Shown here: positions 25,891 to 64,000 of the stretch, in pieces
Position numbering within the stretch: position 1 is the first letter of the stretch
Layout: the number at the start of each line of letters is the position of its first letter
Virus record (IMG/VR): IMGVR_UViG_3300029983_000007
Location: 124,001 to 188,000 of that record
DNA: 64,000 nt
Direction: 5' to 3' (one strand)
Notes under the pieces: model-generated
What the model saw: the letters and a program-made list of their open reading frames with translations, nothing else
Databases searched by the model: none
What the model was told of the DNA's origin: nothing
Position numbers and translations under genes: made by a program

Positions 25891-26231
25891 TATATGTTAA
25901 ATTTATTTGCTTCTAATTCATATTCATTCATATTTACTGTACCCATAAATTTATAATTATTAATTTCATAAAAATTATCAGTCAGATTATCTTCATATTC
26001 TGTCCAACCCCATTTATCATCTTCAACATTACCTCGATTTGGATTATATCCAATAAATATATATTTTGAATTAATACTCCTATTACTCAAAAAACCTTTA
26101 ATTCTATTTTCGCTACACTTTATTTGTCTCAAAGAGTCTTCAAATCTTTCATCAGTTGACATTAGCCAATGTCTACATGAATCATATAAATTAGAGTCAA
26201 AAACATCTTCAAATATTTTAATATACTTCAT
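25890..26231 (-). CDS. Tag-class small protein, paralog 3 of 3
   Basis: MKYIKIFE...HWLMSTDERF...ANKFNI. Confidence 0.75.
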   Translation of the reverse strand: MKYIKIFEDVFDSNLYDSCRHWLMSTDERFEDSLRQIKCSENRIKGFLSNRSINSKYIFIGYNPNRGNVEDDKWGWTEYEDNLTDNFYEINNYKFMGTVNMNEYELEANKFNI

Positions 26232-27868
26232 ATTTTAAATTTTAGGTTACCAGAGTCGTATATTCTGTATATTTTTCTATCAATCATAATTTGATGTTCA
26301 GTTTTATTTTTATCAAAACCTTGCTTGACTAATAAATCTTTTCTGAAGTTAAATCTATGATGTCTGATTCCGTCAATTATATAGTAATAATTTGGTTGTG
26401 TTTTTCCGTCATATTTAAATCCAAGAGTTTCATATAATTTACCTTGACTAAAACTTCTATCAGCGTATGTGGATATTTCATTTGGTTTATAATTTTTCAT
26501 GAAATATTTAAATAATCTTGATGCACCGCCAACAACGTTAGTATTTAATTTATTACAGAAACGTAATAGTTCATATTCACCTTTATTTGTTGATTTTTTA
26601 CCCATTGCTATACGTCTATTACCGAAAGTCATCAGACTAACTAATTCATCATTATAAAATAATCCAATTTTAACTTTTGATCCGACAAATCCTTGAATGT
26701 GATTGGTATCAAGAAATTCTCTAACCAACTTATTGTCAATTATTTCTTTAATTTCGCATTTTCTCGCATATAATTTAATAGTATTTTTACCTAATTTATT
26801 TAATATTATTGATTTAACGATTTCTTGTTTATATAACCAATCATCTTCCCATATATGAATTAATTGTATTCCTTGTTTTTCACACAACTCAGTTTTATTT
26901 AAATGATAATTATTTTCTTTGTGCAATTCATTATGCCAATATACTCCATTGAATTCAAACGCTATTTTTAAATCTGGTATATAAATATCTAATTCATATG
27001 GATTTAAAATAGTTCTATCATTGTATATTATATTAATCTTACAATTGTTTTTTATAAAAATGTGTAATTGAGTTTCATATCCACTATTTGAAAATGATCC
27101 AATTGGATTACATACAGTACAAATAACAGTCTTAGAAATTTTCCTATTATATAAAATATTAGCTACAATATTAAAATTGTGATTTTTTTTACAATCACAT
27201 TTAAATGTATAAATATTATCAATCAATGATATAATATTATTATTTTCATATAATTTTAATATTTTTTTAGTCCTATTTTTTTTTATTTTATCTTTTATTT
27301 CTAAAAATGAAAATGGATTATCAAACCCATGATTTTTTAAATTTGTTTCTTTTATTTTTTCTTTTATTTTTTCTGACTGCATTAGAATACCATTAAATCT
27401 GTCATTCATTGTGTTTTTGAATTTTAATTTAATTTCATTTGATTGCATAGGATTTAATACCTTATAATTATTGAAAGTGGTTTTTTCTTTTTTTAATTTA
27501 ATATCATTTAATTTAGAAACGTTATCAACTCCATATTTTTCTAAACAAGTTCTTTTTGATTTTACTGAATTATTATAATTTTCAACTCCATATTTTTCTA
27601 AGTTGGTTTTTTTAGATTTAAAATTGAAGCATTTTTTACAAGTGTAAATATCATATTTTGATATATTTTTATTATATTTTTGATAAGTTATGATTTTTTC
27701 ATTGTCACAAATGTCACATTTTACCAACAATTTAACCGCACTATTGATTGGTAATTGTGATATCAGTATTTCAATATTATCTCCACTTGATATGTTATTA
27801 TACCATTTTTTATAGTGAGATATTGTTTTATTACTAACTTTTATGTTTATTGTATTTTCTACTATCAT
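26228..27868 (-). CDS. Free-standing homing-endonuclease-like protein (KYGV repeats, PD-(D/E)xK core, Hef-like C-terminus)
   Basis: VKCDIC, LEKYGVEN repeats, ELDIYIPDLKIAFEFNGVYWH, LIHIWEDDW, YELLRFC, YADRS; paralog of 45687-47573. Confidence 0.75.
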   Translation of the reverse strand: MIVENTINIKVSNKTISHYKKWYNNISSGDNIEILISQLPINSAVKLLVKCDICDNEKIITYQKYNKNISKYDIYTCKKCFNFKSKKTNLEKYGVENYNNSVKSKRTCLEKYGVDNVSKLNDIKLKKEKTTFNNYKVLNPMQSNEIKLKFKNTMNDRFNGILMQSEKIKEKIKETNLKNHGFDNPFSFLEIKDKIKKNRTKKILKLYENNNIISLIDNIYTFKCDCKKNHNFNIVANILYNRKISKTVICTVCNPIGSFSNSGYETQLHIFIKNNCKINIIYNDRTILNPYELDIYIPDLKIAFEFNGVYWHNELHKENNYHLNKTELCEKQGIQLIHIWEDDWLYKQEIVKSIILNKLGKNTIKLYARKCEIKEIIDNKLVREFLDTNHIQGFVGSKVKIGLFYNDELVSLMTFGNRRIAMGKKSTNKGEYELLRFCNKLNTNVVGGASRLFKYFMKNYKPNEISTYADRSFSQGKLYETLGFKYDGKTQPNYYYIIDGIRHHRFNFRKDLLVKQGFDKNKTEHQIMIDRKIYRIYDSGNLKFKI

Positions 27869-43464: not shown

Positions 43465-44394
43465 ATGAAATTCACAACTGAAGATTTTGTTATAAAATCA
43501 AAAGATGCTCATGGAGATAAATATGATTATAGTTTAGTAAATTATATAAATAAAAGAAGTAAAGTTAATATAATTTGTCCAATTCATGGAGAATTTGAAC
43601 AAATTGCATATTATCATTATTATTTTAAACAAGGCTGTCAAAAATGTAAAGTAAATAAGCAATTGACAACTGAAGAATTTATAGAAAGAGCAAAATTAAT
43701 ACATGAAGATAAATATGATTATAGTTTAGTAAACTATATAAATGCATATACTAAAGTTGATATTATTTGTAAAAAACATGGAATTTTTTCAATTCGTCCT
43801 GCTGATCATATTAATAATAAGAAAATTAATTGTAGTATGTGTAGTTTAGGATATAAAAAAAATAATAAAATTACAACTGAAGAATTTATTAAACATGCTA
43901 ATGATGTTCATCATTATAAATATAATTATTCAAAAACAAATTATAAAAATTCAAAATGTAAAATAACAATAATTTGTGAAAAGCATGGTGAATTTGAACA
44001 AAATGCTTCAAGTCATATATCAGGTAAAGGTTGTCCTAATTGTAATACAAGTTTAGGCGAAAATAAAATAGAGAATTATTTAAAAAATAATAATATTGCT
44101 ATTGAAAAACAAAAAAAATTTGAATTATGTAAAAATATTAATTATTTGCCTTTTGATTTTTATTTAACTGATTTTAATATTTGTATTGAGTACGACGGTA
44201 TTCAGCATTTTGAAGTAATTGAATATTTTGGAGGTGAAAATAGTTTAAAAGAAAATAAAATAAGAGATAATATAAAAAATGAATATTGTAAAAATAACAA
44301 TATTCATTTAATTAGAATCTCTTATAAAGAAAAAATAGAAGAAAAATTAAATCACGAATTAGCTAATTTTTTAAATAATTCAGATCTTTTTTGA
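43465..44394 (+). CDS. Homing-endonuclease-like protein (three DUF723-like repeats plus Vsr/DUF559-like nuclease)
   Basis: TTEEFI..A...H..KYDYS.V.Y...IIC..HG.F three times; SLGE, LPFDFY, IEYDGIQH, D..KN.YC...I.LIRI. Confidence 0.75.
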   Translation: MKFTTEDFVIKSKDAHGDKYDYSLVNYINKRSKVNIICPIHGEFEQIAYYHYYFKQGCQKCKVNKQLTTEEFIERAKLIHEDKYDYSLVNYINAYTKVDIICKKHGIFSIRPADHINNKKINCSMCSLGYKKNNKITTEEFIKHANDVHHYKYNYSKTNYKNSKCKITIICEKHGEFEQNASSHISGKGCPNCNTSLGENKIENYLKNNNIAIEKQKKFELCKNINYLPFDFYLTDFNICIEYDGIQHFEVIEYFGGENSLKENKIRDNIKNEYCKNNNIHLIRISYKEKIEEKLNHELANFLNNSDLF

Positions 44395-45678: not shown

Positions 45679-47585
45679 AAAAGTTTATGTTAATAACAAA
45701 AGAAATTGAAATTTTCAATAAAATTATACCTATATCTGAATTGTCTTTACATAGTCATAAAAAAATTGTGGTTAAATGTGATAATTGTGATACTATTAAA
45801 GAGATTACATATCAATCTTATAATAATTCAACTAATAATAATTCAACTGATTATTATTGTCATAATAAGGAATGCATTAATAAAAAAAGAATAATATCAA
45901 CAAGAGAAAAATATGGTGTTGATAATGTTTCTCAATTAAAAATGATAAAAGATAAAAAAATACAAACATGTTTAGATAATTTTGGTGTTAAATTTCCAAC
46001 TCAATCAGATAAAGTAAAATCGAAAAGTAAAAATACAAATTTAGAGAAATATGGAGTAGAATGGCAAACTCAATCTAATAATTTTAAAGAAAAAAGTAAA
46101 ATTACAAATTTAGAAAGATATGGAACTGAAAGCGCAATGCAATCTGATATAATTAAAAATAAGGTTAAAAATACTTGTTTAATTAAATATGATGTAGATT
46201 CATATATGAAAACATATGATTTTAAAAATAAATCTATAATCACAAATTTGAAAAATTTTGGAGTAAAATATCCATCTCAAAATAATCAGATTCAAGATAA
46301 AATAAAAAAAACTAATATTATAAGATATGGTGTAGAAAGACCAACTCAAAATGAAAAAATAAAAATAAAAATAAAAAATTCATATCAGTATAATTTTGGT
46401 GTAAATAATATTAAAAATGTAAAAAATTTGAAAGATAAATTACAAAAAACTAATTTATACAGATATAATACTGATTTTTATTCTCAGTCTGAACAATATA
46501 AAAAAATAGTTAAAAATAGAAAAATTATTTTATTATCCAAAAAATACAACTTAAAAATTGAAGATATAGTAGATGATAATATTGTATTGGTTTGTGATAA
46601 ATGTGATAATAAATTTGTCGCTACATATCAACAATTATACAATAGATTTCTTTATAATACTCCTTTGTGTACTATTTGTAATCCGATTGAATCTTTGTCT
46701 TATGTTGAAACAGAATTTCAAGAATTTATTTCAAAAAATTATAATGGAAAAATATTTTTAAACAATAGAAAAATAATTAAGCCTAATGAATTAGATGTTT
46801 ATTTACCTGAATTAAATTTAGCGTTTGAATTTAATGGATTATATTGGCATTCCGAACGTTATAAAGATGATAATTATCATTTAATAAAAACTGAAATGTG
46901 TGAAAAATTAGATATACAATTGTTGCATATTTGGGAAGATGATTGGAATTTCAAAAAAGATATAGTAAAATCAATAATATTAAATAAATTAGGTAAAAAT
47001 AGTAATAAAATATATGCCAGAAAATGTAAAATAAAAGAAATAAGTGATACTAAATTACTTAGACATTTTCTTGATACTAATCATATTCAAGGTTATATAA
47101 ATTCAAAAATTAATATAGGTTTATTTTATAATGATGAATTATTTAGCCTGATGACTTTTGGTAGCAAACGAAAGATTATGAATTCTTTGTCCAATGATGA
47201 TGAATTTGAAATCTATAGATTTTGTAATAAATTGAATACTAATATTATAGGTGGAGCTAGTAAATTGTTTTCTTTTTTTATTAAAAATTATAATTTTTCA
47301 AAAATCATAAGCTATTCTGATAGATCATATTTTAATGGTAATAATTATTTAAAATTAGGATTTAAATTTTATAGTAATACGTCTCCAAATTATTATTATA
47401 CAATAAAAGGTAAAAGAGAATATAGATTTAAATTTAGAAAAGATATATTAATTAAGGAAGGTTATGATTCTAATAAGACTGAACAACAAATTATGTTAGA
47501 TAGAAATATTTTTAGAATATATAATTCTGGTAATTTGAAATTTATATATGAAAAAAGAAAAAGTTTATGTTAATAACAAAAGAAA
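45679..47585 (+). mobile_element. Endonuclease gene bracketed by 27-bp direct repeats
   Basis: aaaagtttatgttaataacaaaagaaa at 45679-45705 and 47559-47585. Confidence 0.55.
45687..47573 (+). CDS. Free-standing homing-endonuclease-like protein (KYGV repeats, PD-(D/E)xK core, Hef-like C-terminus)
   Basis: About 9 [KR][YF]GV-type repeats; ELDVYLPELNLAFEFNGLYWH; LLHIWEDDW; YSDRS. Confidence 0.75.
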   Translation: MLITKEIEIFNKIIPISELSLHSHKKIVVKCDNCDTIKEITYQSYNNSTNNNSTDYYCHNKECINKKRIISTREKYGVDNVSQLKMIKDKKIQTCLDNFGVKFPTQSDKVKSKSKNTNLEKYGVEWQTQSNNFKEKSKITNLERYGTESAMQSDIIKNKVKNTCLIKYDVDSYMKTYDFKNKSIITNLKNFGVKYPSQNNQIQDKIKKTNIIRYGVERPTQNEKIKIKIKNSYQYNFGVNNIKNVKNLKDKLQKTNLYRYNTDFYSQSEQYKKIVKNRKIILLSKKYNLKIEDIVDDNIVLVCDKCDNKFVATYQQLYNRFLYNTPLCTICNPIESLSYVETEFQEFISKNYNGKIFLNNRKIIKPNELDVYLPELNLAFEFNGLYWHSERYKDDNYHLIKTEMCEKLDIQLLHIWEDDWNFKKDIVKSIILNKLGKNSNKIYARKCKIKEISDTKLLRHFLDTNHIQGYINSKINIGLFYNDELFSLMTFGSKRKIMNSLSNDDEFEIYRFCNKLNTNIIGGASKLFSFFIKNYNFSKIISYSDRSYFNGNNYLKLGFKFYSNTSPNYYYTIKGKREYRFKFRKDILIKEGYDSNKTEQQIMLDRNIFRIYNSGNLKFIYEKRKSLC

Positions 47586-50999: not shown

Positions 51000-51335
51000 A
51001 TGAAGATATTGGATAAATTTTCACATTTTATAAAAAAAACGTATTATTATTTTAAGTGGGGTAGTGTACTTTATCCTATTTCTAATAAATTAGATTTTTT
51101 ATTGGTGTATTTGGAAAAATTTGAAATTGTTTCTATAGAAATATCAAATTATGAGTGTGTAATTGTATTTGGAGATTATTCGAAATTAATTTTTTGGAAT
51201 GCAAATAGATGGTATGGATGGATGAATTCAGGACAAATGTATTTTAGTAATGGAAAATCAATTAAATGGTCAAGTAAATCACCATCTTGTGAGGTTTTAT
51301 ATAAATATAGAAAATTGATAAATAATAATAAATAA
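51000..51335 (+). CDS. Paralog 1 of 3 (no RxxKL tail)
   Basis: FWNANRWYGWMNSG...KSPS. Confidence 0.7.
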   Translation: MKILDKFSHFIKKTYYYFKWGSVLYPISNKLDFLLVYLEKFEIVSIEISNYECVIVFGDYSKLIFWNANRWYGWMNSGQMYFSNGKSIKWSSKSPSCEVLYKYRKLINNNK

Positions 51336-51772
51336 TGATAAAATTTAAAAAAATTTTTAAAAAAATTTTTAAAAAAATAGTAAGACCATTTGAATTGTTT
51401 TATTATAATATTAGTTGGGGTATGAGATTAAATAGACTGGATAAGAATTTAGATATTTTGTTAATATATTTAAAATCTGTCAAAATTGAGTTGATTCAAT
51501 TAAATGAATATAATTGTATAATAAAATTTACTGATAATTCAGAACTAACTTTTTGGACTGCAAATAGGTGGTATGGATTTATGAATTCAGGACAAATGAA
51601 TTTTAGTAATGGTAAATCAATTTCATGGTCAAGTAAATCTCCATCTTATGAAGTGCTACATGAATATAAGAAATTAATTAAAAAACACGAAAAATCAACA
51701 AAGGTAGATTTTTATGAATATTTGCCTATAAAATTACTCAGAAAAGAAAAATTAAAAAAAATTAAATTATGA
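51335..51772 (+). CDS. Paralog 2 of 3, RxxKL tag class
   Basis: FWTANRWYGFMNSG; ends LPIKLLRKEKLKKIKL. Confidence 0.7.
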   Translation: MIKFKKIFKKIFKKIVRPFELFYYNISWGMRLNRLDKNLDILLIYLKSVKIELIQLNEYNCIIKFTDNSELTFWTANRWYGFMNSGQMNFSNGKSISWSSKSPSYEVLHEYKKLIKKHEKSTKVDFYEYLPIKLLRKEKLKKIKL

Positions 51773-52191
51773 ATAAATTACTAAAAAGTATATATTATCG
51801 TATTTTATGGTTCAAATTGAGATCTCATAAATGTTATGATGCTCTTGATATTTTGACTATATATTTAAAAAATGTAGAAATATCCAAAATTACACTTGAT
51901 AGATCTAATTATAAAATATTTTTTTTAGATGGATCAAGATTAAAATTTAGTAATTGTGATAGATGGCCTGGCTGGATGTCCAATGGAGATATGACATTTC
52001 ATAATGGTAAAATTATGTCATGGTATGATAAATCACCATCATATGAAACATTATTTAAATTTAAAAATTTTATATTGAATTATGAAAAAAAAGAAGCAAA
52101 AAGGATACTATATGAGGAAAAAATAAAATTTGATGATTGTTTACCTATAAAATTACTCAGAAAAGAAAAATTAAAAAAAATTACAAAATAA
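51769..52191 (+). CDS. Paralog 3 of 3, RxxKL tag class
   Basis: DRWPGWMSNG; ends LPIKLLRKEKLKKITK. Confidence 0.7.
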   Translation: MNKLLKSIYYRILWFKLRSHKCYDALDILTIYLKNVEISKITLDRSNYKIFFLDGSRLKFSNCDRWPGWMSNGDMTFHNGKIMSWYDKSPSYETLFKFKNFILNYEKKEAKRILYEEKIKFDDCLPIKLLRKEKLKKITK

Positions 52192-52709
52192 TGGGATTAG
52201 CTATATCATATTTTAGTAGAATTAAATTAAAAGATAATGCAGATATTGAAGATGATGAATATTATATTGAAAATGATAAATATTTCATGTATCAATTAGG
52301 TTCATTAAAGAATGGTCAAAGTTGTGAAAAAACATTTGAATCTGTACAAGGACATTTTAGTGCTGGTTCATATTCTGGTTATGGTGTTTGGAGAAAAAAT
52401 TTAATAGAAATGCTAGGTTATGTTTGTATTCAGGATGTTTGTAATGATTTTGATACTAATATTAGATTGATTAAATTAAAAGAAATTGAAACTGGTAATA
52501 AAATAAGAATTAAACCATTTTATGAGATTATTTGTTTCAGTGATTGTGACGGAGCTATAGGTCCTGAGGTATCAAAAAAATTATATGAAGATTTTGTAGA
52601 GTTTGATAATATTGCAAGTATGCAAGGTGATTATTTTTATGAATTATATTCTAATTTTAAAACTGCATTTGAAGTAGCATCAGATAATGGAGCTGTTTTT
52701 TTTTATTAA
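52191..52709 (+). CDS. Hypothetical phage protein
   Basis: Start ATG 52191 (TAATG overlap); FSAGSYSGYG.WR, FSDCDGAIGP; internal IRLIKLKEI. Confidence 0.7.
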   Translation: MGLAISYFSRIKLKDNADIEDDEYYIENDKYFMYQLGSLKNGQSCEKTFESVQGHFSAGSYSGYGVWRKNLIEMLGYVCIQDVCNDFDTNIRLIKLKEIETGNKIRIKPFYEIICFSDCDGAIGPEVSKKLYEDFVEFDNIASMQGDYFYELYSNFKTAFEVASDNGAVFFY

Positions 52710-52754
52710 AAATAAACAAAACACAAAAAACTTATTACAAATAACAAAAAACGT

Positions 52755-52919
52755 ATGGCACATATTTTAGGATTTATTATTTTAATAGTGATAACAATTT
52801 TAGTTGGTAATGATGCAGAGAAAAGAGGAATGAGTGGATTTGGATGGGGTGCTGGAGTGTTCTTTTTGATGATAATCTTTCTACCTTTGTATTTTATAGT
52901 TAGAAAACCACTGTTATAA
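52755..52919 (+). CDS. 54-aa two-helix membrane protein (PLDc_N-like; not in ORF track)
   Basis: MAHILGFIILIVITILVGNDAEKRGMSGFGWGAGVFFLMIIFLPLYFIVRKPLL. Confidence 0.7.
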   Translation: MAHILGFIILIVITILVGNDAEKRGMSGFGWGAGVFFLMIIFLPLYFIVRKPLL

Positions 52920-52950
52920 AAAAAAGAGAGATTTTAAATCTCTCTTTTTT
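52920..52950. terminator. Bidirectional terminator
   Basis: aaaaaagagagattt-t-aaatctctctttttt. Confidence 0.75.
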
Positions 52951-53272
52951 GTTTTTTTATTAAATGAAGTTCATCTAACCATTGTATAAATTTTAATCTA
53001 TCTTCAGGTATACCTCTAAAAAATTTGCCACCAATGTTGATATATGATTTATTTTCTTTGCTATATCTTAAAATTTCAAAATAACCAATATCTTCGTCTT
53101 CGTCATATTCTAATGTAATTTTAATTGTTGAAAATTTTTTACCTGGATAAACAAATTTGTGTTCATCCCACAATGAGTTCCAAGCTTTTCCAACCTGTGA
53201 ATATGTCATCTTATATTGTTTAATTTCTTTGTCTGTGTATTGCTCAGATTCAAATGTTTTTAAGTGCTTCAT
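52934..53272 (-). CDS. Small protein with MKHLKTFE leader (no KFNI tail)
   Basis: Late-type motif at 53278-53287 immediately upstream. Confidence 0.7.
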   Translation of the reverse strand: MKHLKTFESEQYTDKEIKQYKMTYSQVGKAWNSLWDEHKFVYPGKKFSTIKITLEYDEDEDIGYFEILRYSKENKSYINIGGKFFRGIPEDRLKFIQWLDELHLIKKQKREI

Positions 53273-53289
53273 GTTATTATATATTAAAA

Positions 53290-55194
53290 TTATTTTATTT
53301 TTTTCTTTAATGAATCAAGTTCTTGTAACCACATATCAGTTTCAGTAGTAGATAATATTTTATCTATCTCAATTTTTATTTTTTCGTAAGTGTCTTTTAA
53401 CTCAGATAATTTTTCTGTTGATAAACTAATTAATGATATATTAATTAAATAATCATAACTATCTTTATACATTTCAATTTTGTTATTTTCAATCTGTGAT
53501 ATTATTTTTTCTTTTGTTTTATTTTCAAAAATTATATCTTTTTTTAATACACAATTGATAAATTTCATTTTATTTATAATATACTTTTTCTGCTCTTCAA
53601 ATTTGTATAATATATTTTTCTTTCTCAAATTATAAAAATTTGTTCTTATTTTAACAAAATCATCAATTATATCATATTGATCTTTATAAAAATATATTTT
53701 ACCTTCTTCATTGAACAAATTCATATTATTAATACTTATATAAGAATCAAGATTGAATTTTTTAATTATCATTTCATCTGTTAATTCACTCAATATATCT
53801 TCTGATATAGTAATTACAATGTTTATGCTATCATCTGTACAATAATTATCATAATCTTTGATGTATTTTTCATCTATGAGTTTATCTAAATATTCAAAGT
53901 ATTTATCATTCCACATCATTATTGGTAATTCTAAAATGCTTAGTTTATTTTTGCCTAATTTCTTAAATATTCCTCTTGATATATATCTTTTATTATTTAA
54001 ATCAGGAATAATTTCACCTTTGAATCCATTATACCAAGGTATTAACTCTATGTTTTTCTTACTCTTTTTCAAATAATTTTGAATATATGTTATTACATCA
54101 GTAGGATTGAATGATGGTATGTTAGTTGACCAACCAGTACCTATACCTTCAGCATTATTTATTAATATCATAGGTATTATTGGTATATAATTTTTTGGCT
54201 CTATTTTGTATCCATCATCAATAAGATATTCTAATAAATCATCATCTTCTGATTTGAATATATATTTAGTTATTTCGTTTAATTTGGTGAATATATATCT
54301 AGGAGCAGATGCGTCTTTTCCTCCTTTTAATCTGGATCCAAATTGTCCTACTGGTTCCAACAGATTTAAGTTGTTTGATCCTATGAAATTTTGAGACATT
54401 GAAATTATTGCTTGTTCTAAAGATGTTGATCCATTATGATATGCTGATAAACTTATAATATCACCACATAATTGGCTTACTTTAATTTCATTTTTAAAAT
54501 TCTTTTTTAGTAAAGTGTAAAGTATTTTTCTTTGAGATGGTTTTAATCCATCTATCATTGATGGTATTGATCTTATATTATCCGCCATACTAAACTCTAT
54601 GAATTCATTATTGAAAAACGAGTCATATGTTTGTTTTGTTTTAAATTTATCAAAATCTACATTAGACTTATAATTTAATAACCATTCTTTCCTATCCTCT
54701 ACTCTTTTTTTGTTGAATGCCAAATCTATCATATCTCTTTCTTTGATTATATCAGATGAGTTGAATTTTATTAAATGCTTATTTAAATCTTTAAAAAATA
54801 ATTTAATCTCAAATGGCTCCAAAGTACCAAGACCTTTTAACCATTTTAAGTGCCATTCAGAATATTCTGTTTTGCTTTTCCATTTTTGATAATCATATGT
54901 ATTATAAAAATATTGTGTTTTACCCTTTTTTGTAGCTTTTACTACTGGGGTAATAAATTGATATAAAAACTCAAGTTGTAATAATTCGGGCCAGTATTTA
55001 TCAAAAAAATTTAGTAGAAGCCCAGATATGTGAGAACCGTCACAATTATGAACCAATATATTATCTATTTTATTTTTAGATATAAAAAACGAATTATCAT
55101 CTTCTACTTTAATGTCATACATTATAGTATCTTTGCTTTCTTTTTTTATTTCATCAATATTTAATATTTCATAATCATTTAGATTTATTTTCAT
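53290..55194 (-). CDS. Type IIA topoisomerase C-half carrying a 50-aa C-intein at its N-terminus
   Basis: MYDIKVEDDNSFF...ILVHN/CDGSHISGLL; KGLGT, RSIPSMIDGLKPSQRK, catalytic ASAPRYIFT, GIGTGWST. Confidence 0.92.
   Translation of the reverse strand: MKINLNDYEILNIDEIKKESKDTIMYDIKVEDDNSFFISKNKIDNILVHNCDGSHISGLLLNFFDKYWPELLQLEFLYQFITPVVKATKKGKTQYFYNTYDYQKWKSKTEYSEWHLKWLKGLGTLEPFEIKLFFKDLNKHLIKFNSSDIIKERDMIDLAFNKKRVEDRKEWLLNYKSNVDFDKFKTKQTYDSFFNNEFIEFSMADNIRSIPSMIDGLKPSQRKILYTLLKKNFKNEIKVSQLCGDIISLSAYHNGSTSLEQAIISMSQNFIGSNNLNLLEPVGQFGSRLKGGKDASAPRYIFTKLNEITKYIFKSEDDDLLEYLIDDGYKIEPKNYIPIIPMILINNAEGIGTGWSTNIPSFNPTDVITYIQNYLKKSKKNIELIPWYNGFKGEIIPDLNNKRYISRGIFKKLGKNKLSILELPIMMWNDKYFEYLDKLIDEKYIKDYDNYCTDDSINIVITISEDILSELTDEMIIKKFNLDSYISINNMNLFNEEGKIYFYKDQYDIIDDFVKIRTNFYNLRKKNILYKFEEQKKYIINKMKFINCVLKKDIIFENKTKEKIISQIENNKIEMYKDSYDYLINISLISLSTEKLSELKDTYEKIKIEIDKILSTTETDMWLQELDSLKKKIK
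55045..55194 (-). other. Split intein, C-fragment (IntC)
   Basis: Block F YDIKV, block G VHN, followed by +1 Cys. Confidence 0.9.
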
Positions 55195-55345
55195 CTTTAT
55201 TCATATCTTTTTTTATTAAGTGCTCAATATATTTTGATTTGTTTATATTATTATCTTCACAAATTTCATCTAATATATTATCTAATTCAATATTTATAGA
55301 TACTGATAATGTTTTCTTTTTGTCTGTTATTGTTGGTCTTCCCAT
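55175..55345 (-). CDS. 56-aa ribbon-helix-helix protein with GRP hook (not in ORF track)
   Basis: MGRPTITDKKKTLSVSINIELDNILDEICEDNNINKSKYIEHLIKKDM...; overlaps the topo C-half start. Confidence 0.75.
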   Translation of the reverse strand: MGRPTITDKKKTLSVSINIELDNILDEICEDNNINKSKYIEHLIKKDMNKDENKSK

Positions 55346-55359
55346 TGTGTTTTTGTTTT

Positions 55360-55425
55360 TATATATAAAATATTAACTAATTTGTTTGAAAATAGATAAA
55401 AATGAAACTTTTTTATTTATATATA
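55360..55425. promoter_or_regulatory. Divergent promoter region of the RHH cassette
   Basis: Minus strand AAAC-N18-TATATA at 55360-55387; plus strand TTTATATATA at 55416-55425. Confidence 0.6.
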
Positions 55426-55444
55426 CTATAAAAATGCTAAGAAT

Positions 55445-55606
55445 ATGAAAAAACCAATCACAAAAAGAAAAGTTTCTATCTCAATAAATAGTGAAGTATA
55501 TAATTATATTGAAGATAGATTTGAAAATAAATCTAAATATATTGAATATTTAATATATCAAGATATATTAAAATGTGGCAAATTAAAAAAAGATATAATA
55601 TTATGA
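55445..55606 (+). CDS. 53-aa ribbon-helix-helix protein (not in ORF track)
   Basis: MKKPITKRKVSISINSEVYNYIEDRFENKSKYIEYLIYQDIL...; ATGA-coupled to the endonuclease. Confidence 0.75.
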   Translation: MKKPITKRKVSISINSEVYNYIEDRFENKSKYIEYLIYQDILKCGKLKKDIIL

Positions 55607-56430
55607 TATTAGATACTGAAATATTATTTAATGTGAGTAATAAAAATAAAGCACATTTGATATGCAAAGGTTATGATGTGACTCACAAAGATGTTATAAT
55701 TAAAGTTGAAGATTTGCCTACATATAGTCATTATAAAATAAAAGTAAAATGCGATATATGTGGAACTGAAAAATATTTAGGAAATCATAAATATATGAAA
55801 AACACAAGACTTAATACTAAAGATTATTGTTGTTGTCAAAAATGTGGAGTTAATAAATTACTTGATACATTTAAAGAAAATTACGGGTGTATAAGTAGTC
55901 AACATCCTAATATCAAATTAAAGCAAGAGAAAACAAATATCGAAAGATATGGTAGTAAATCTTGTCAATCAAATAAAGAAATTAAACAAAAATCATATGA
56001 TACTATGATAAAAAAATATGGTGTAAAATATTCATTACAGAATAATGAAATAAAAAAAAAGTTTATGTTAAAAATAGATGATACTGTTAAAAAAACTAAT
56101 ATTACAAAAGTTCAAAGAGGAGTAATGGTAGATTATGATAATTTTAGTTCATTTAAAGATTATAGAAAATTAGTTGATATAGAAACAAGAAGAAACAAAA
56201 AACTATTATATGAAGAATGGAATGGACTTGATTTTTATGATAATGAATATATTGGTGAAAATTTAAATTTAAATTATAGAGATAAATTATATCCATCTAT
56301 AGATCATAAAATATCAATATTGAATGGATTTTTAGATGATATTGATCCTTATAGTATTGGTAATATTACGAATTTGTGTATAACAACAAGAACAAATAAC
56401 TCAAAGAAGAATTCTAAAAATGTGTTCTAA
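55603..56430 (+). CDS. HNH-like homing endonuclease lying antisense between the split-intein halves
   Basis: Start ATG 55603; VKCDICG, YG repeats, PSIDHKIS...NLCITTRTNNSKK. Confidence 0.75.
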   Translation: MILDTEILFNVSNKNKAHLICKGYDVTHKDVIIKVEDLPTYSHYKIKVKCDICGTEKYLGNHKYMKNTRLNTKDYCCCQKCGVNKLLDTFKENYGCISSQHPNIKLKQEKTNIERYGSKSCQSNKEIKQKSYDTMIKKYGVKYSLQNNEIKKKFMLKIDDTVKKTNITKVQRGVMVDYDNFSSFKDYRKLVDIETRRNKKLLYEEWNGLDFYDNEYIGENLNLNYRDKLYPSIDHKISILNGFLDDIDPYSIGNITNLCITTRTNNSKKNSKNVF

Positions 56431-56442
56431 ATATTATTAAAT

Positions 56443-56476
56443 AAAAGAAAGAGATAAATAATTATCTCTTTCTTTT
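56443..56476. terminator. Bidirectional terminator between the endonuclease and the topo N-half
   Basis: aaaagaaagagataa-ataa-ttatctctttctttt. Confidence 0.75.
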
Positions 56477-58264
56477 TAATATTTTATCAGTAATTAATAT
56501 TTCTTTGACTTTTACTAATATAATTTCATTGTTTCTTAATATTGGAATCTCATGATTTTCACTAAATGTATATTCATATCCATTGATATTTAATTTTATT
56601 ATATTAGTCTTGTGAGTTTCAATTATATTGAGTATTTTTTTCCATTCATTGTTGTGTGTTAAAACTTCATCGTCATAATTAATATCTTTTATTGCTACAT
56701 ATCCTCTTTTAGTTAGAACTAACGTATTTTCTTCTATACAATCAGCATCTGTCATCATTATAACTTTACCGTATCTTAATGTTCTTGTTGATGTGTATTG
56801 TTTACCAAATTCTAATCCTAATATTTTTATAATTGAAGTAATTTCATCGTTTTCTCTCATTTTTTGTATAGAAACATCCCTTACATTCAATGGTTTACCC
56901 TTAAGAGGGTATATTCCATAATAGTCATTTCCAACAACTGATAATCCTGCACGAGCTGTTGATTTTGCTGAATCTCCTTCAGTTAGTATTAATCCACATT
57001 TCATGCTATGTGGTTGCTTACCTGCCATATTAGCATCATCAAGCTTCGCTATTTTAACTTTAATTTTCTGATTATTCTGAGTTGATTTCTTAGCATCTTG
57101 TAATTCTTTGAATGATGCAAAATTTACTATGTCATTTTTTATTTGAGATGACATAAGTTTTTTGATAAATGAATCTGAAACAGTTACATCTTTGATGATT
57201 TCAGTTATCATTCTTGTAGTTAGATTTTCTTTTGTTTGTGTTTCAAATGATGGATTAGGAATTTTACAACTAAGAAATAAAAATAAATGATTTTTGATCA
57301 TTGATTGTTTAACGCTTGTTGATTTTATTTTATCATCAAGTGATTTGGTGATTTGATTAGTTATGTAATTAACATGAGTACCTCCAATATGAGTAGATAT
57401 TCCATTTACCATTGATACTTGTTGAAACATATCATTAGGTGTGCGTGCTATACCGACTTCCCAGTTCTCATTTATTTTTTCGTAGAAGAACTCTTCATCA
57501 TCATTGATAAACATCTTCATGTAATCTTTAAATGACTTGATAGGTATTAATACATCATTATAGTAGACTTTAACTCCAGTGCTATAAGCTGCAATGTCAA
57601 TAGCTCGTTTTAAAAATATTGATTGAATTTCATCTGTTATTTCAGTTAGATTAAATTTTTCAAAATCTGGATAATATGTAATTTTTGTGTAATTTTTGTC
57701 TGATGTAGTTATTTTTGGCTTAGTTTTATCAGACATATTATTGGTGAATGTTTGAATGTATTTATGCTTACCATCTGCAGTTTCAATTGTAAATTTCTTT
57801 GAGAATATGTTAGTTGTTTTTATTCCAATTCCATGTGTACCACCAACCATCCTTTTATCATCGTCCGTGAAATTCTCCCCCGTGAGCAAATTTCCGAAAA
57901 TCAACTCACACACATAAATTTTATGTTCTTTGTGCATAACAATAGGTACTCCTGGTCCGTCGTTTTCAATTGTTATGTGGTCTTTATCTACGTTTATCTT
58001 GATGTATTTGACTTGACCATCTGTTCTGATGTAATGATCTGATGCATTGGTTAATGCTTCATCGAATAGTTTAATAAATCCTGCATTATAATTTACTTCT
58101 TTATATACAAATTTGTTGTCTTTAATTTCATTAATATCTTCAAATACATACATTTTGGTTGGTTCAGTATATATATTTCCAATATACATTCCTGGTTTTT
58201 TTAATACGTGTTCAATTGGTGTTAATTTCTTATATCTATCCTCTATTGTTTTTTTATTCATCAA
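56462..58264 (-). CDS. Type IIA topoisomerase N-half (GHKL ATPase plus part of TOPRIM) ending in a 92-aa N-intein
   Basis: HVLKKPGMYIG, DEALTNA.D, NDGPGVP, GGTHGIG.K, LTEGDSAK, PLKGKPLNV, IMMTDAD/CIEENT. Confidence 0.92.
   Translation of the reverse strand: MMNKKTIEDRYKKLTPIEHVLKKPGMYIGNIYTEPTKMYVFEDINEIKDNKFVYKEVNYNAGFIKLFDEALTNASDHYIRTDGQVKYIKINVDKDHITIENDGPGVPIVMHKEHKIYVCELIFGNLLTGENFTDDDKRMVGGTHGIGIKTTNIFSKKFTIETADGKHKYIQTFTNNMSDKTKPKITTSDKNYTKITYYPDFEKFNLTEITDEIQSIFLKRAIDIAAYSTGVKVYYNDVLIPIKSFKDYMKMFINDDEEFFYEKINENWEVGIARTPNDMFQQVSMVNGISTHIGGTHVNYITNQITKSLDDKIKSTSVKQSMIKNHLFLFLSCKIPNPSFETQTKENLTTRMITEIIKDVTVSDSFIKKLMSSQIKNDIVNFASFKELQDAKKSTQNNQKIKVKIAKLDDANMAGKQPHSMKCGLILTEGDSAKSTARAGLSVVGNDYYGIYPLKGKPLNVRDVSIQKMRENDEITSIIKILGLEFGKQYTSTRTLRYGKVIMMTDADCIEENTLVLTKRGYVAIKDINYDDEVLTHNNEWKKILNIIETHKTNIIKLNINGYEYTFSENHEIPILRNNEIILVKVKEILITDKILKRKR
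56465..56740 (-). other. Split intein, N-fragment (IntN)
   Basis: Block A CIEENTLV, GYVAIKDI..DDEVLTH, block B FSENH, then stop. Confidence 0.9.
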
Positions 58265-58286
58265 ATTTTAATTAATTTTTACATTG

Positions 58287-58314
58287 TATATATCTTAAAA
58301 ATTATGTAAAGTTT
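58287..58314 (-). promoter_or_regulatory. Putative middle promoter AAAC-N18-TATATA
   Basis: Upstream of the topo N-half. Confidence 0.65.
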
Positions 58315-58372
58315 TGATTTATAATATAAAGAGTGAAAATATGATGATTTACAATGATATATATGTTAAAAA

Positions 58373-58687
58373 TTAAATATTATTTAATTTTTCTATCTTC
58401 AATTTTCTACATATTTTTTGATGGTATGATTCTATAAATTTTTCAAAATCTTCAAAATTTAGAAATTCTTGTTTAAGTTCAACATGAGGATAAGGTGCTG
58501 TACTATATATGTTTTTATGAAAACATATTACTTCATTAGAGTATTCATCCATATATGAATTTATGTTTATATAGCCACCATTTTCTCTTATGATATAATA
58601 ATTTGAACATCTAAGTTTATAGCCAATTGATGTTATAAGTTTTAATACACGGTCATCAATGTAATCTTTGCTTAAATGATCATTCAT
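58373..58687 (-). CDS. Small protein, RxxKL tag class, paralog of the next gene
   Basis: KLI.SIGYK, ENGGYININ, EFLNF; ends RKLKIEKLNNI. Confidence 0.7.
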   Translation of the reverse strand: MNDHLSKDYIDDRVLKLITSIGYKLRCSNYYIIRENGGYININSYMDEYSNEVICFHKNIYSTAPYPHVELKQEFLNFEDFEKFIESYHQKICRKLKIEKLNNI

Positions 58688-58983
58688 AATAAGTTTTTTA
58701 ATTTTAGTTTTCTGAATATTCTTTTATGATATTCTTTTATGAATGTTTCAAAATTTTTAAAATTTAAAAATTCTTTTGAATAAACTTTGATTTCATTTGC
58801 TATTTGGTAATATTTACTGAATGATATAATTTTATCACCATCATTTAGTACATAAAAATTTATATTTATATATCCATTTTCTTCAAATAACGTAAATTTA
58901 TCAAATCTATTTTTATAACCTATAGACTCAATTAATTTGATGCATTTTTTGTCGTAATATTCTCTATATCTAAAATCAATCAT
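58684..58983 (-). CDS. Small protein, RxxKL tag class
   Basis: Ends RKLKLKNLL; AAAC-N18-TATATA at 59014-59041. Confidence 0.7.
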   Translation of the reverse strand: MIDFRYREYYDKKCIKLIESIGYKNRFDKFTLFEENGYININFYVLNDGDKIISFSKYYQIANEIKVYSKEFLNFKNFETFIKEYHKRIFRKLKLKNLL

Positions 58984-59233
58984 GTGATGTTATTATGCTT
59001 ATAATTAAAAATTTATATATTATTATTTTGATGACATGTTTTTGATATTTGTTAAATAAATGACTAAAATATATAATAAATATGTTTTTATTTTTTTTAT
59101 TGAAATAGTTTATTTACTTTTGTGAAGTAATTGAATTATAATAATATTTATAATAATATTATTAATTAGTTTTTAATTTAAATTATTATGTATATCTTTG
59201 TATTGTAATATAAAAACTTAATAATGAATTTTT

Positions 59234-63688: not shown

Positions 63689-63853
63689 ATGAAGAAAATT
63701 AAAACTAAAGTAGCAATATCAATCGCAATAGATAAAGGAATGAATGAATATCTATCAGAAAACTTTGAAAATAAGTCAAAATATATTGAGCATTTGATAT
63801 ATAAAGATTTAGTTGAAAATAATATAATAGAAGAAAATAAATATAAAATGTAA
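63689..63853 (+). CDS. 54-aa ribbon-helix-helix protein (not in ORF track)
   Basis: MKKIKTKVAISIAIDKGMNEYLSENFENKSKYIEHLIYKDL...; homolog of 55445-55606. Confidence 0.75.
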   Translation: MKKIKTKVAISIAIDKGMNEYLSENFENKSKYIEHLIYKDLVENNIIEENKYKM

Positions 63854-64000
63854 TGGGTAAAAAATCAAAAAATGATGTTTTTATTAAAAAGGCAATAGAG
63901 GTACATGGTAATAAATATGACTATAGTTTAGTAGAATATAAACATAATCAAACAAATGTTGAAATTGTGTGTAATGATTGCGGATATAAGTTTCTAAGGA
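63853..64000 (+). CDS. DUF723-like repeat endonuclease, 5' part (runs off the window)
   Basis: TAATG-coupled start; FIKKAIEVHGNKYDYSLVEY...VEIVCNDCG. Confidence 0.65.
   Translation, partial: MGKKSKNDVFIKKAIEVHGNKYDYSLVEYKHNQTNVEIVCNDCGYKFLR

Follow-up and report, generated by a model that had tools for sequence, protein, structure and literature searches.

A phage type IIA topoisomerase gene apparently broken at the TOPRIM metal-binding motif by a split intein

In a 64,000-nucleotide stretch of the 330-kb IMG/VR virus record IMGVR_UViG_3300029983_000007 (positions 124,001 to 188,000; this whole stretch is hereafter called the window), two neighboring minus-strand genes at 53290-58264 encode consecutive parts of one type IIA DNA topoisomerase (topo II), here denoted the N-half and the C-half. 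We consider it highly probable that they derive from a gene for a single-chain, eukaryote-like enzyme that was broken in two by a class-1 split intein inside the DxDxDG motif of the TOPRIM domain. Fracture of the topoisomerase by a natural split intein was the central claim of the original prediction, made from the DNA sequence of the window, and it is supported by the colinearity of the two parts with uninterrupted alleles, the invariance of the splicing residues, purifying selection, the presence of contiguous mini-inteins at the same site, and the recovery of the arrangement in independent assemblies. The window, with a G+C content of about 23%, is taken to come from a huge phage. The nearest deposited DNA is that of 735-kb and 636-kb uncultured huge phages (LR756501/3/4), and proteins identical to the C-half and to the N-half (read from the ATG at 58261) are present on contigs of up to 711 kb.

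Anatomy of the two halves and the insertion point

Both the open reading frame (ORF) listing and direct reading of the sequence reproduce the anatomy first proposed for the locus. The N-half ORF (56462-58264, minus strand, 600 amino acids (aa)) runs to ...KVIMMTDAD and then continues into a 92-aa N-terminal intein fragment (IntN) that is followed by a TAA stop codon (56462-56464, minus). Its extein portion (56741-58264, minus; 508 codons when counted from the TTG at 58264) comprises the GHKL ATPase, the transducer, and the TOPRIM domain as far as ...MTDAD, and IntN itself (56465-56740, minus; C-IEENT...KRKR) contains Cys1, block A, block B in the form S-E-N-H, and a basic tail, KILKRKR. The C-half ORF (53290-55194, minus, 634 aa) begins with a 50-aa C-terminal intein fragment (IntC; 55045-55194, minus; MKINLND...ILVHN) that places block F, MYDIKVEDDNSFF, and block G, ILVHN, immediately ahead of CDGSHISGLL. 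The C-extein (53290-55044, minus; 584 aa plus the stop codon) supplies the +1 Cys, the DG of DxDxDG, TOPRIM_C, the winged helix with the catalytic Tyr (PRYI), the tower, and the coiled coil. Pfam recognizes GHKL, DNA_gyraseB, and Toprim in the N-half, together with a weak Hint_2 match (E 2e-4) that spans exactly residues 509-551 and thus begins precisely at the intein Cys1, and TOPRIM_C and DNA_topoisoIV in the C-half.

One detail of the expected product probably requires correction. Because gene callers give 599 aa for the N-half and its homologues begin with M-x-K-K-[ST]-I-E, translation probably starts at the ATG at 58261 instead of the TTG at 58264, so that the predicted spliced product would be 1091 aa long, not the 1092 aa (508+584) originally calculated; the underlying anatomy is unaffected.

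The insertion point was located by comparison with uninterrupted single-chain relatives, namely L007 and L008 (1098 aa, 77% and 69% identical, respectively), L009 (1100 aa), and LR756501 (1082 aa); such alleles had been sought as a check on the original prediction. When the halves were aligned separately, the N-extein corresponded to residues 1-510 of L007 and the C-extein to residues 512-1092, so that the two exteins abut with neither gap nor duplication. The same holds for cellular enzymes: on yeast Top2 (4gfh), the N-extein aligns to residues 8-528 and the C-extein starts at 530, and on human TOP2A, the N-extein stops at 543 and the C-extein restarts at 545. The break thus falls between the second Asp of the TOPRIM DxDxDG metal-binding motif and the next residue and, because the exteins abut on both the uninterrupted alleles and Top2, the intein can be placed after the second and before the third acidic residue of the metal site, DxDxD(G). 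Only the +1 residue differs, being Cys in all intein-bearing alleles, as opposed to Asn, Val, Ala, or Thr in the uninterrupted ones.

The enzyme is of the single-chain type IIA kind, with a complete domain set (GHKL, transducer, TOPRIM E...DxD, TOPRIM_C, and winged-helix Tyr), although in the window one chain would require splicing. The best PDB matches of the exteins are yeast and human Top2, with 388 bits (N-extein) and 416 bits (C-extein) to 4gfh compared with 176 and 147 bits to the T4 enzyme and 119 and 155 bits to that of African swine fever virus (ASFV). The proposed eukaryote-like, single-chain character therefore holds, with T4, ASFV, and gyrase all matching the exteins far less well than yeast and human Top2 do. 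The uninterrupted L007 protein (L007:5983-9279) gives 863 bits (E 2e-258) with yeast 4gfh and about 820 bits with human TOP2A/B, as against 288 bits with ASFV, 228 and 155 bits with T4, and about 200 bits with topo IV. As an observation in its own right, this phage topo II is far nearer to cellular eukaryotic Top2 than to the T4, ASFV, or bacterial enzymes.

Conservation of the intein and the case for splicing

Searches with the IntN and IntC regions were run against 5.8 billion proteins, with matches clustered at 90% identity. The IntN region yielded 43 clusters, 45-100% identical, nearly all of them N-halves of 590-607 aa with an intein part of 91-98 aa, one exception being the contiguous allele P0039 described below; IntC yielded 21 clusters of 631-646 aa proteins in which the ATG start, block F, and the ...HN|CDG junction are conserved. 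Cys1, which directly follows ...MTDAD, is invariant in the 43 alleles as well as in 11 contiguous relatives, and Asp24, His29, and the block-B His63 are likewise invariant, in split and contiguous alleles alike. In the 21 IntC clusters, conservation extends to the terminal His-Asn and the +1 Cys (the window reads ...ILVHN|CDG), and the penultimate His is kept in all split alleles while varying in some contiguous ones.

Among four loci compared in pairs, dN/dS is 0.20-0.64 in the intein halves and 0.10-0.27 in the exteins, and synonymous sites approach saturation; being below 1, these ratios indicate that both intein halves and exteins evolve under purifying selection. This bears on the possibility that the locus is a decaying pseudogene, left behind when an inserted endonuclease disrupted a contiguous intein, with halves that are no longer used. 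In a genome full of homing endonucleases, disruptive insertions must occur; however, besides the selection acting across alleles, both ORFs are intact in about 40 (N-half) and 21 (C-half) clusters, all the catalytic motifs of the topoisomerase, including NASDH, GTHGIG, EGDSA, and DAD, are preserved, and no second topo II gene was seen within the window. We therefore consider decay very improbable.

An exhaustive HMMER search with a natural contiguous allele as the query (P0039:126-262, 53% identical to the window IntN) revealed mini-inteins of 134-152 aa, devoid of any endonuclease, at the identical DxD|C...N|CDG junction. Their hosts are single-chain topo II (P0066, of 1232 aa, P0039, and P0103) as well as large subunits of the T4 type (P0072, P0086, P0089, P0110, P0115, and P0116). 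These mini-inteins share with the window intein the insertion point, the Cys1/Cys+1 chemistry, and the conserved blocks, and are 25-53% identical to IntN, but they are single polypeptides with a short linker where the window intein is broken. In a joint alignment, the split IntN sequences end in the variable linker loop of the contiguous forms, which places the break in the window at the canonical position for splitting and endonuclease insertion. An AlphaFold2 (AF2) model of P0039:126-262 has a mean predicted local distance difference test score (pLDDT) of 96.7, and its top PDB matches in Foldseek are all inteins or HINT domains with template modeling (TM) scores of 0.7-0.86, among them the AceL NrdHF split intein (TM 0.86), gp41-1 (0.79/0.84), NrdJ-1, and Npu DnaE. 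We found no paper describing contiguous mini-inteins at DxD|C.

Taken together with the sequences of the two halves, these comparisons suggest the following course of events. The N-half is translated with its 92-aa IntN tail and the C-half with its 50-aa IntC head, as sequence and comparison show; the basic IntN and the acidic IntC would then associate into one HINT domain, in which Cys1, the block-B His, the terminal His-Asn, and the +1 Cys would catalyze trans-splicing. Release of the intein would yield an enzyme of 1091 or 1092 aa with a D-A-D-C-D-G junction, the Cys scar being left at a tolerant position of the enzyme.

Several points weigh against this interpretation. Trans-splicing of the window halves, and with it the spliced product, is a prediction from sequence comparison. 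The predicted HINT fold comes from the 53%-identical contiguous homologue rather than from the halves in the window. Similarity to solved inteins is weak, with E 0.016 for IntN, whose best solved relative, the gp41-1 intein (6qaz), aligns in register, and E 0.67 for IntC. Block B retains the His of TxxH but has Ser at the Thr position here (SENH) and Gly in most alleles. The activity and target of the endonuclease encoded between the halves, and the role of the accompanying ribbon-helix-helix (RHH) genes (see below), are putative. Finally, T4 topo II, whose break lies some 38 residues ahead of this DxD motif, functions as separate chains.

The T4 case leads directly to the explanation in which the two polypeptides assemble non-covalently and the intein halves act only as a dimerization handle, without splicing. 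Such an arrangement would not be isolated, given that the split NrdA of Aeh1 works without covalent joining and that one study describes a fragmented ribonucleotide reductase (RNR) assembled via interaction domains of mobile-element origin (Friedrich 2010, PMC3045599). Nevertheless, we regard it as unlikely, because the residues that serve catalysis alone (Cys1, block-B His, terminal Asn, and +1 Cys) are kept in every allele seen, whereas docking would need none of them, and because an unspliced HINT domain of 142 aa would lie within the loop that binds metal in the TOPRIM active site. The confinement of the +1 Cys to intein-bearing alleles likewise speaks against docking without splicing.

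The break could also be an assembly artefact or could be rejoined at the RNA level, through an endonuclease-bearing intron or ribosomal bypassing. Group I introns that contain endonuclease ORFs are indeed numerous in related huge phages (PMC12880540), and, three codons past the site discussed here, translation of T4 gene 60 bypasses 50 nt. However, a permissive Rfam scan of 52500-59000 detected no intron or ribozyme; on either side of the gap, conservation is at the protein level and includes intein motifs, for which introns would have no need; and two of the three genes in the gap lie on the opposite strand. At least 14 contigs, which originate from several JGI and ENA samples and from different assemblers, show the order N-half, endonuclease, RHH, RHH, C-half; this excludes an artefact of assembly. 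Among the alternatives considered, we deem this one the least probable, and fracture by a split intein remains the reading that we favor.

Genes in the gap, allelic series, and three-piece relatives

The halves are separated by 1267 nt (55195-56461), and all the elements originally listed for this gap of about 1.3 kb, an antisense HNH gene, a terminator, and two RHH genes, are present, with the qualification that the HNH assignment derives from a motif. The free-standing homing endonuclease gene (55603-56430, plus strand, antisense to the topoisomerase; 275 aa) could be extended to a start at 55573, but 55603, which matches its homologues, is most likely the true start. The protein contains a CxxC...CxxxC zinc ribbon, DUF7487 repeats, and a C-terminal HNH-like D-H...N...N motif, and matches phrog_12131 and phrog_3339, each annotated as 'homing endonuclease'. 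D234-H235, N257, and N266 do not vary among 19 homologues, and a strand-strand-helix is predicted at 231-269. The HNH family of Pfam gave no match even at E 10 for the C-terminal 90 aa of three endonuclease homologues, a PDB sequence search with the endonuclease returned zinc-ribbon noise only, and Foldseek with the full AF2 model (pLDDT 88, predicted TM score (pTM) 0.50) found nothing significant; on the strength of the conserved motif, we call the protein HNH-like.

A hairpin terminator (56443-56476, assigned to no strand), with a 15-bp stem followed by a T run, lies between the convergent N-half and endonuclease genes and overlaps the final codons of IntN; it was the one site found in the terminator scan, compared with 0.0 expected in shuffled sequences. 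The remainder of the gap is occupied by two small paralogous genes, 49% identical (E 8e-9). One of these (55445-55606, plus, 53 aa) is RHH-like, and its stop codon overlaps the endonuclease start (ATGA). The other (55175-55345, minus, 56 aa) is an RHH gene of the CopG/Arc-like type that shares 20 nt with the beginning of the C-half ORF and matches Pfam RepB-RCR_reg (1e-5) and RHH_1 as well as phrog_876 (transcriptional repressor). The two genes diverge from an A+T-rich intergenic region of 99 bp (55346-55444, no strand) that presumably serves as promoter/operator; a search of this region for operator-shaped repeats produced A+T-rich matches only, indistinguishable from chance.

The gap would be the mobile part of the locus, with the antisense HNH-like endonuclease presumably cutting intein-less alleles and driving the cassette into them. 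The hairpin may end both convergent transcripts, and the divergent RHH paralogs, of which one is linked to the endonuclease gene and the other to the C-half, likely supply and control the promoters that the separated C-half needs.

Two-gene modules of an RHH gene and an endonuclease recur beyond the gap. A third RHH paralog in the window (63689-63853, plus) shows the same ATGA overlap, here with the start of a DUF723-type homing endonuclease gene that leaves the window at its end (64000). The modules seen so far are 55445-56430 and 63689-64000 (+) in the window, L005:6315-7825, and L004:13461-13795. Members of one small RHH family are coupled with endonucleases of at least three unrelated families, which suggests that the RHH family is a portable regulator of free-standing homing endonucleases.

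The content of the gap differs among loci in which the intein halves are intact: in L004, it comprises an endonuclease of the same family as that in the window and two unrelated ORFs but no RHH gene; in L005, a different endonuclease (DUF723/CapR/phrog_559) and an RHH pair; and in L025, only 63 nt, without an endonuclease. Some relatives are interrupted at a second site (site a), EGD|SA, in the other TOPRIM motif. In L010 (L010:5989-11140) and L011, topo II is split at EGD|SA only, with a long IntN (about 170 aa); the gap there holds an ORF of 379 aa from the family phrog_22677, and a DUF7487 endonuclease lies just upstream of the gene, not inside it. P0039 is split at site a and contiguous at site b (DxD|C). 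Together with the alleles described above, the series is nearly complete, including empty, contiguous mini-intein, split with endonuclease, split without endonuclease, and doubly split forms.

In the doubly split form, both sites are broken and topo II is encoded by three genes, as in L023:27-5050 (pieces of 596, 215, and 634 aa; also in L022 and L024) and L025:2780-7356 (590, 225, and 635 aa). The first product ends in the IntN of site a after ...EGD, the last starts with the IntC of site b, and the middle product (206-225 aa) consists of the IntC of site a, a 77-aa TOPRIM extein, and the IntN of site b. The architecture of the middle piece recurs in six clusters at 50% identity (P0068, P0074, P0081, P0087, P0090, and P0094). 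The inteins at the two sites are distantly related, with 27% identity over 69 aa. A literature search, which was not exhaustive, turned up no report of a natural protein that needs two trans-splicing events. The three-piece topo II may be the first natural case requiring two such reactions. We offer as a tentative possibility, held at somewhat less than even confidence, that the site-b intein of the window belongs to a naturally orthogonal pair and that the paired RHH genes could make assembly of the topoisomerase a regulated step. The three-piece enzyme would then need two ordered trans-splicing reactions that do not cross-react, and where the intein shares a gene with another split intein, as in these relatives, nature may already have selected for the absence of cross-reaction. 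Of all the leads, the three-piece relatives and the RHH-endonuclease modules most deserve to be pursued.

The genome from which the window derives appears to be heavily colonized by homing endonucleases. Several more are encoded elsewhere in the window, among them large DUF7487 endonuclease-like proteins at 26228-27868 (minus, 546 aa) and 45687-47573 (plus, 628 aa) and a 309-aa phrog_559/681 endonuclease (43465-44394, plus) whose gene overlaps the end of a glycosyltransferase gene. Other products of the window include a UvsW-like helicase, collagen-like and Fib_succ_major proteins, and an NAD synthase. The topoisomerase locus is flanked by two tandem pairs of small paralogous ORFs, at 51335-52191 (145 and 140 aa, ending ...LPIKLLRKEKLKKI) and at 58373-58983 (104 and 99 aa, ending ...RKLK[IL]...). 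In the 636-kb phage LR756504, a Vsr/DUF723-like endonuclease ORF (L002:162-860) lies just upstream of an RNR gene (L002:1428-2960) that resembles only the C-terminal part of the class I RNR large subunit and may be another gene in pieces.

Comparison with known fractured genes and with T4

The locus belongs to the known class of 'fractured genes', described by Dassa et al. in 2009 (PMC2677866) in gp41, IMPDH, DnaE, NrdA, NrdJ, ligase, and terminase, with gp41-1, gp41-8, NrdJ-1, and IMPDH-1 among the inteins; no published precedent was found for topo II as the host gene or for the DxD site. The original prediction had been right to invoke fractured phage replication genes with a free-standing endonuclease as the precedent. 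In those systems, as in the window, an essential phage replication gene is present as two halves at a single locus, the split falls in the endonuclease-insertion loop, a free-standing endonuclease gene separates the halves, and alleles with and without that gene form a series. They differ from the window in that their endonucleases are GIY-YIG or Vsr-like, whereas that of the window is HNH-like (DUF7487) and antisense, and in the two RHH regulator genes of the window gap. With its closely comparable and nearly complete series of alleles, this family lends itself well to tests of the Dassa model of the origin of split inteins.

The charge pattern of the halves, correctly described as the reverse of that in DnaE-type pairs, had been taken as a hint of an orthogonal ligation tool. 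The acidic IntC is real (11 D/E vs 7 K+R; net charge -4), but the pattern is not new: pairs with a positive IntN and a negative IntC were already reported for gp41-1 and gp41-8 (PMC2677866), which resemble the window intein in this respect although sequence identity to gp41-1 is low. Because a basic IntN and an acidic IntC have already been described there, the charge pattern gives no evidence of orthogonality. For protein engineering, the family nonetheless offers a compact candidate split intein (92+50 aa, Cys1/Cys+1) with dozens of natural variants.

As to precedents in topo II, the word 'topoisomerase' is absent from the 2009 study (PMC2677866), and our literature search uncovered no description of a topo II split intein located at the DxD site, although curated intein registries, which may name the site, lay outside the search. 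For the GyrB and Top2 inteins already published, to which one in CroV Top2 may belong, the papers searched state no insertion points. Among deposited phage genomes (the INPHARED set), none carries the intein, and a tblastn search with the contiguous allele matched nothing. Two candidates raised by a query of the window IntN with its flank were rejected: the GyrB gene of Listeria phage LPJP1 is uninterrupted, and MT835926 contains a methyltransferase intein. The closest case comes from a preprint (bioRxiv 10.1101/2022.08.31.505936), which describes a metagenomic T4-like Topo2L ORF1 (MGS5) as 'split by a homing intein', with a VSR endonuclease flanked by Hint and HintC. As in the window, a phage topo II gene is interrupted there by intein halves around an endonuclease; the MGS5 intein lies upstream of the mobA site, and so probably elsewhere than at DxD, and is treated in a single sentence without characterization of a family.

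The most instructive comparison is with gp39/gp60 of T4, where the same enzyme family was struck in the metal-binding region of TOPRIM by a mobile endonuclease element, mobA. In T4 gp60, ...AIMTDADHDG precedes the 50-nt coding gap, three codons past the position of the window intein. Because the mobA split, the bypass, and the intein all fall there, this short stretch of topo II emerges as a recurrent target of mobile elements that has met with three different repairs, and the DNA encoding TOPRIM DxDxDG as a repeated landing site. The outcomes differ. T4 topo II is a three-subunit enzyme and that of the window is of the single-chain kind; the window extensions are intein halves with all the splicing residues, and T4 gp60 has none. 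With the window, type IIA topoisomerase joins the phage replication genes that survive as 'genes in pieces'. In T4, where no intein is involved, non-covalent assembly brings together pieces that are never joined, and the second lesion is overcome by a ribosome hop; in the huge phages, the break has apparently been solved by protein splicing, which would restore one chain.

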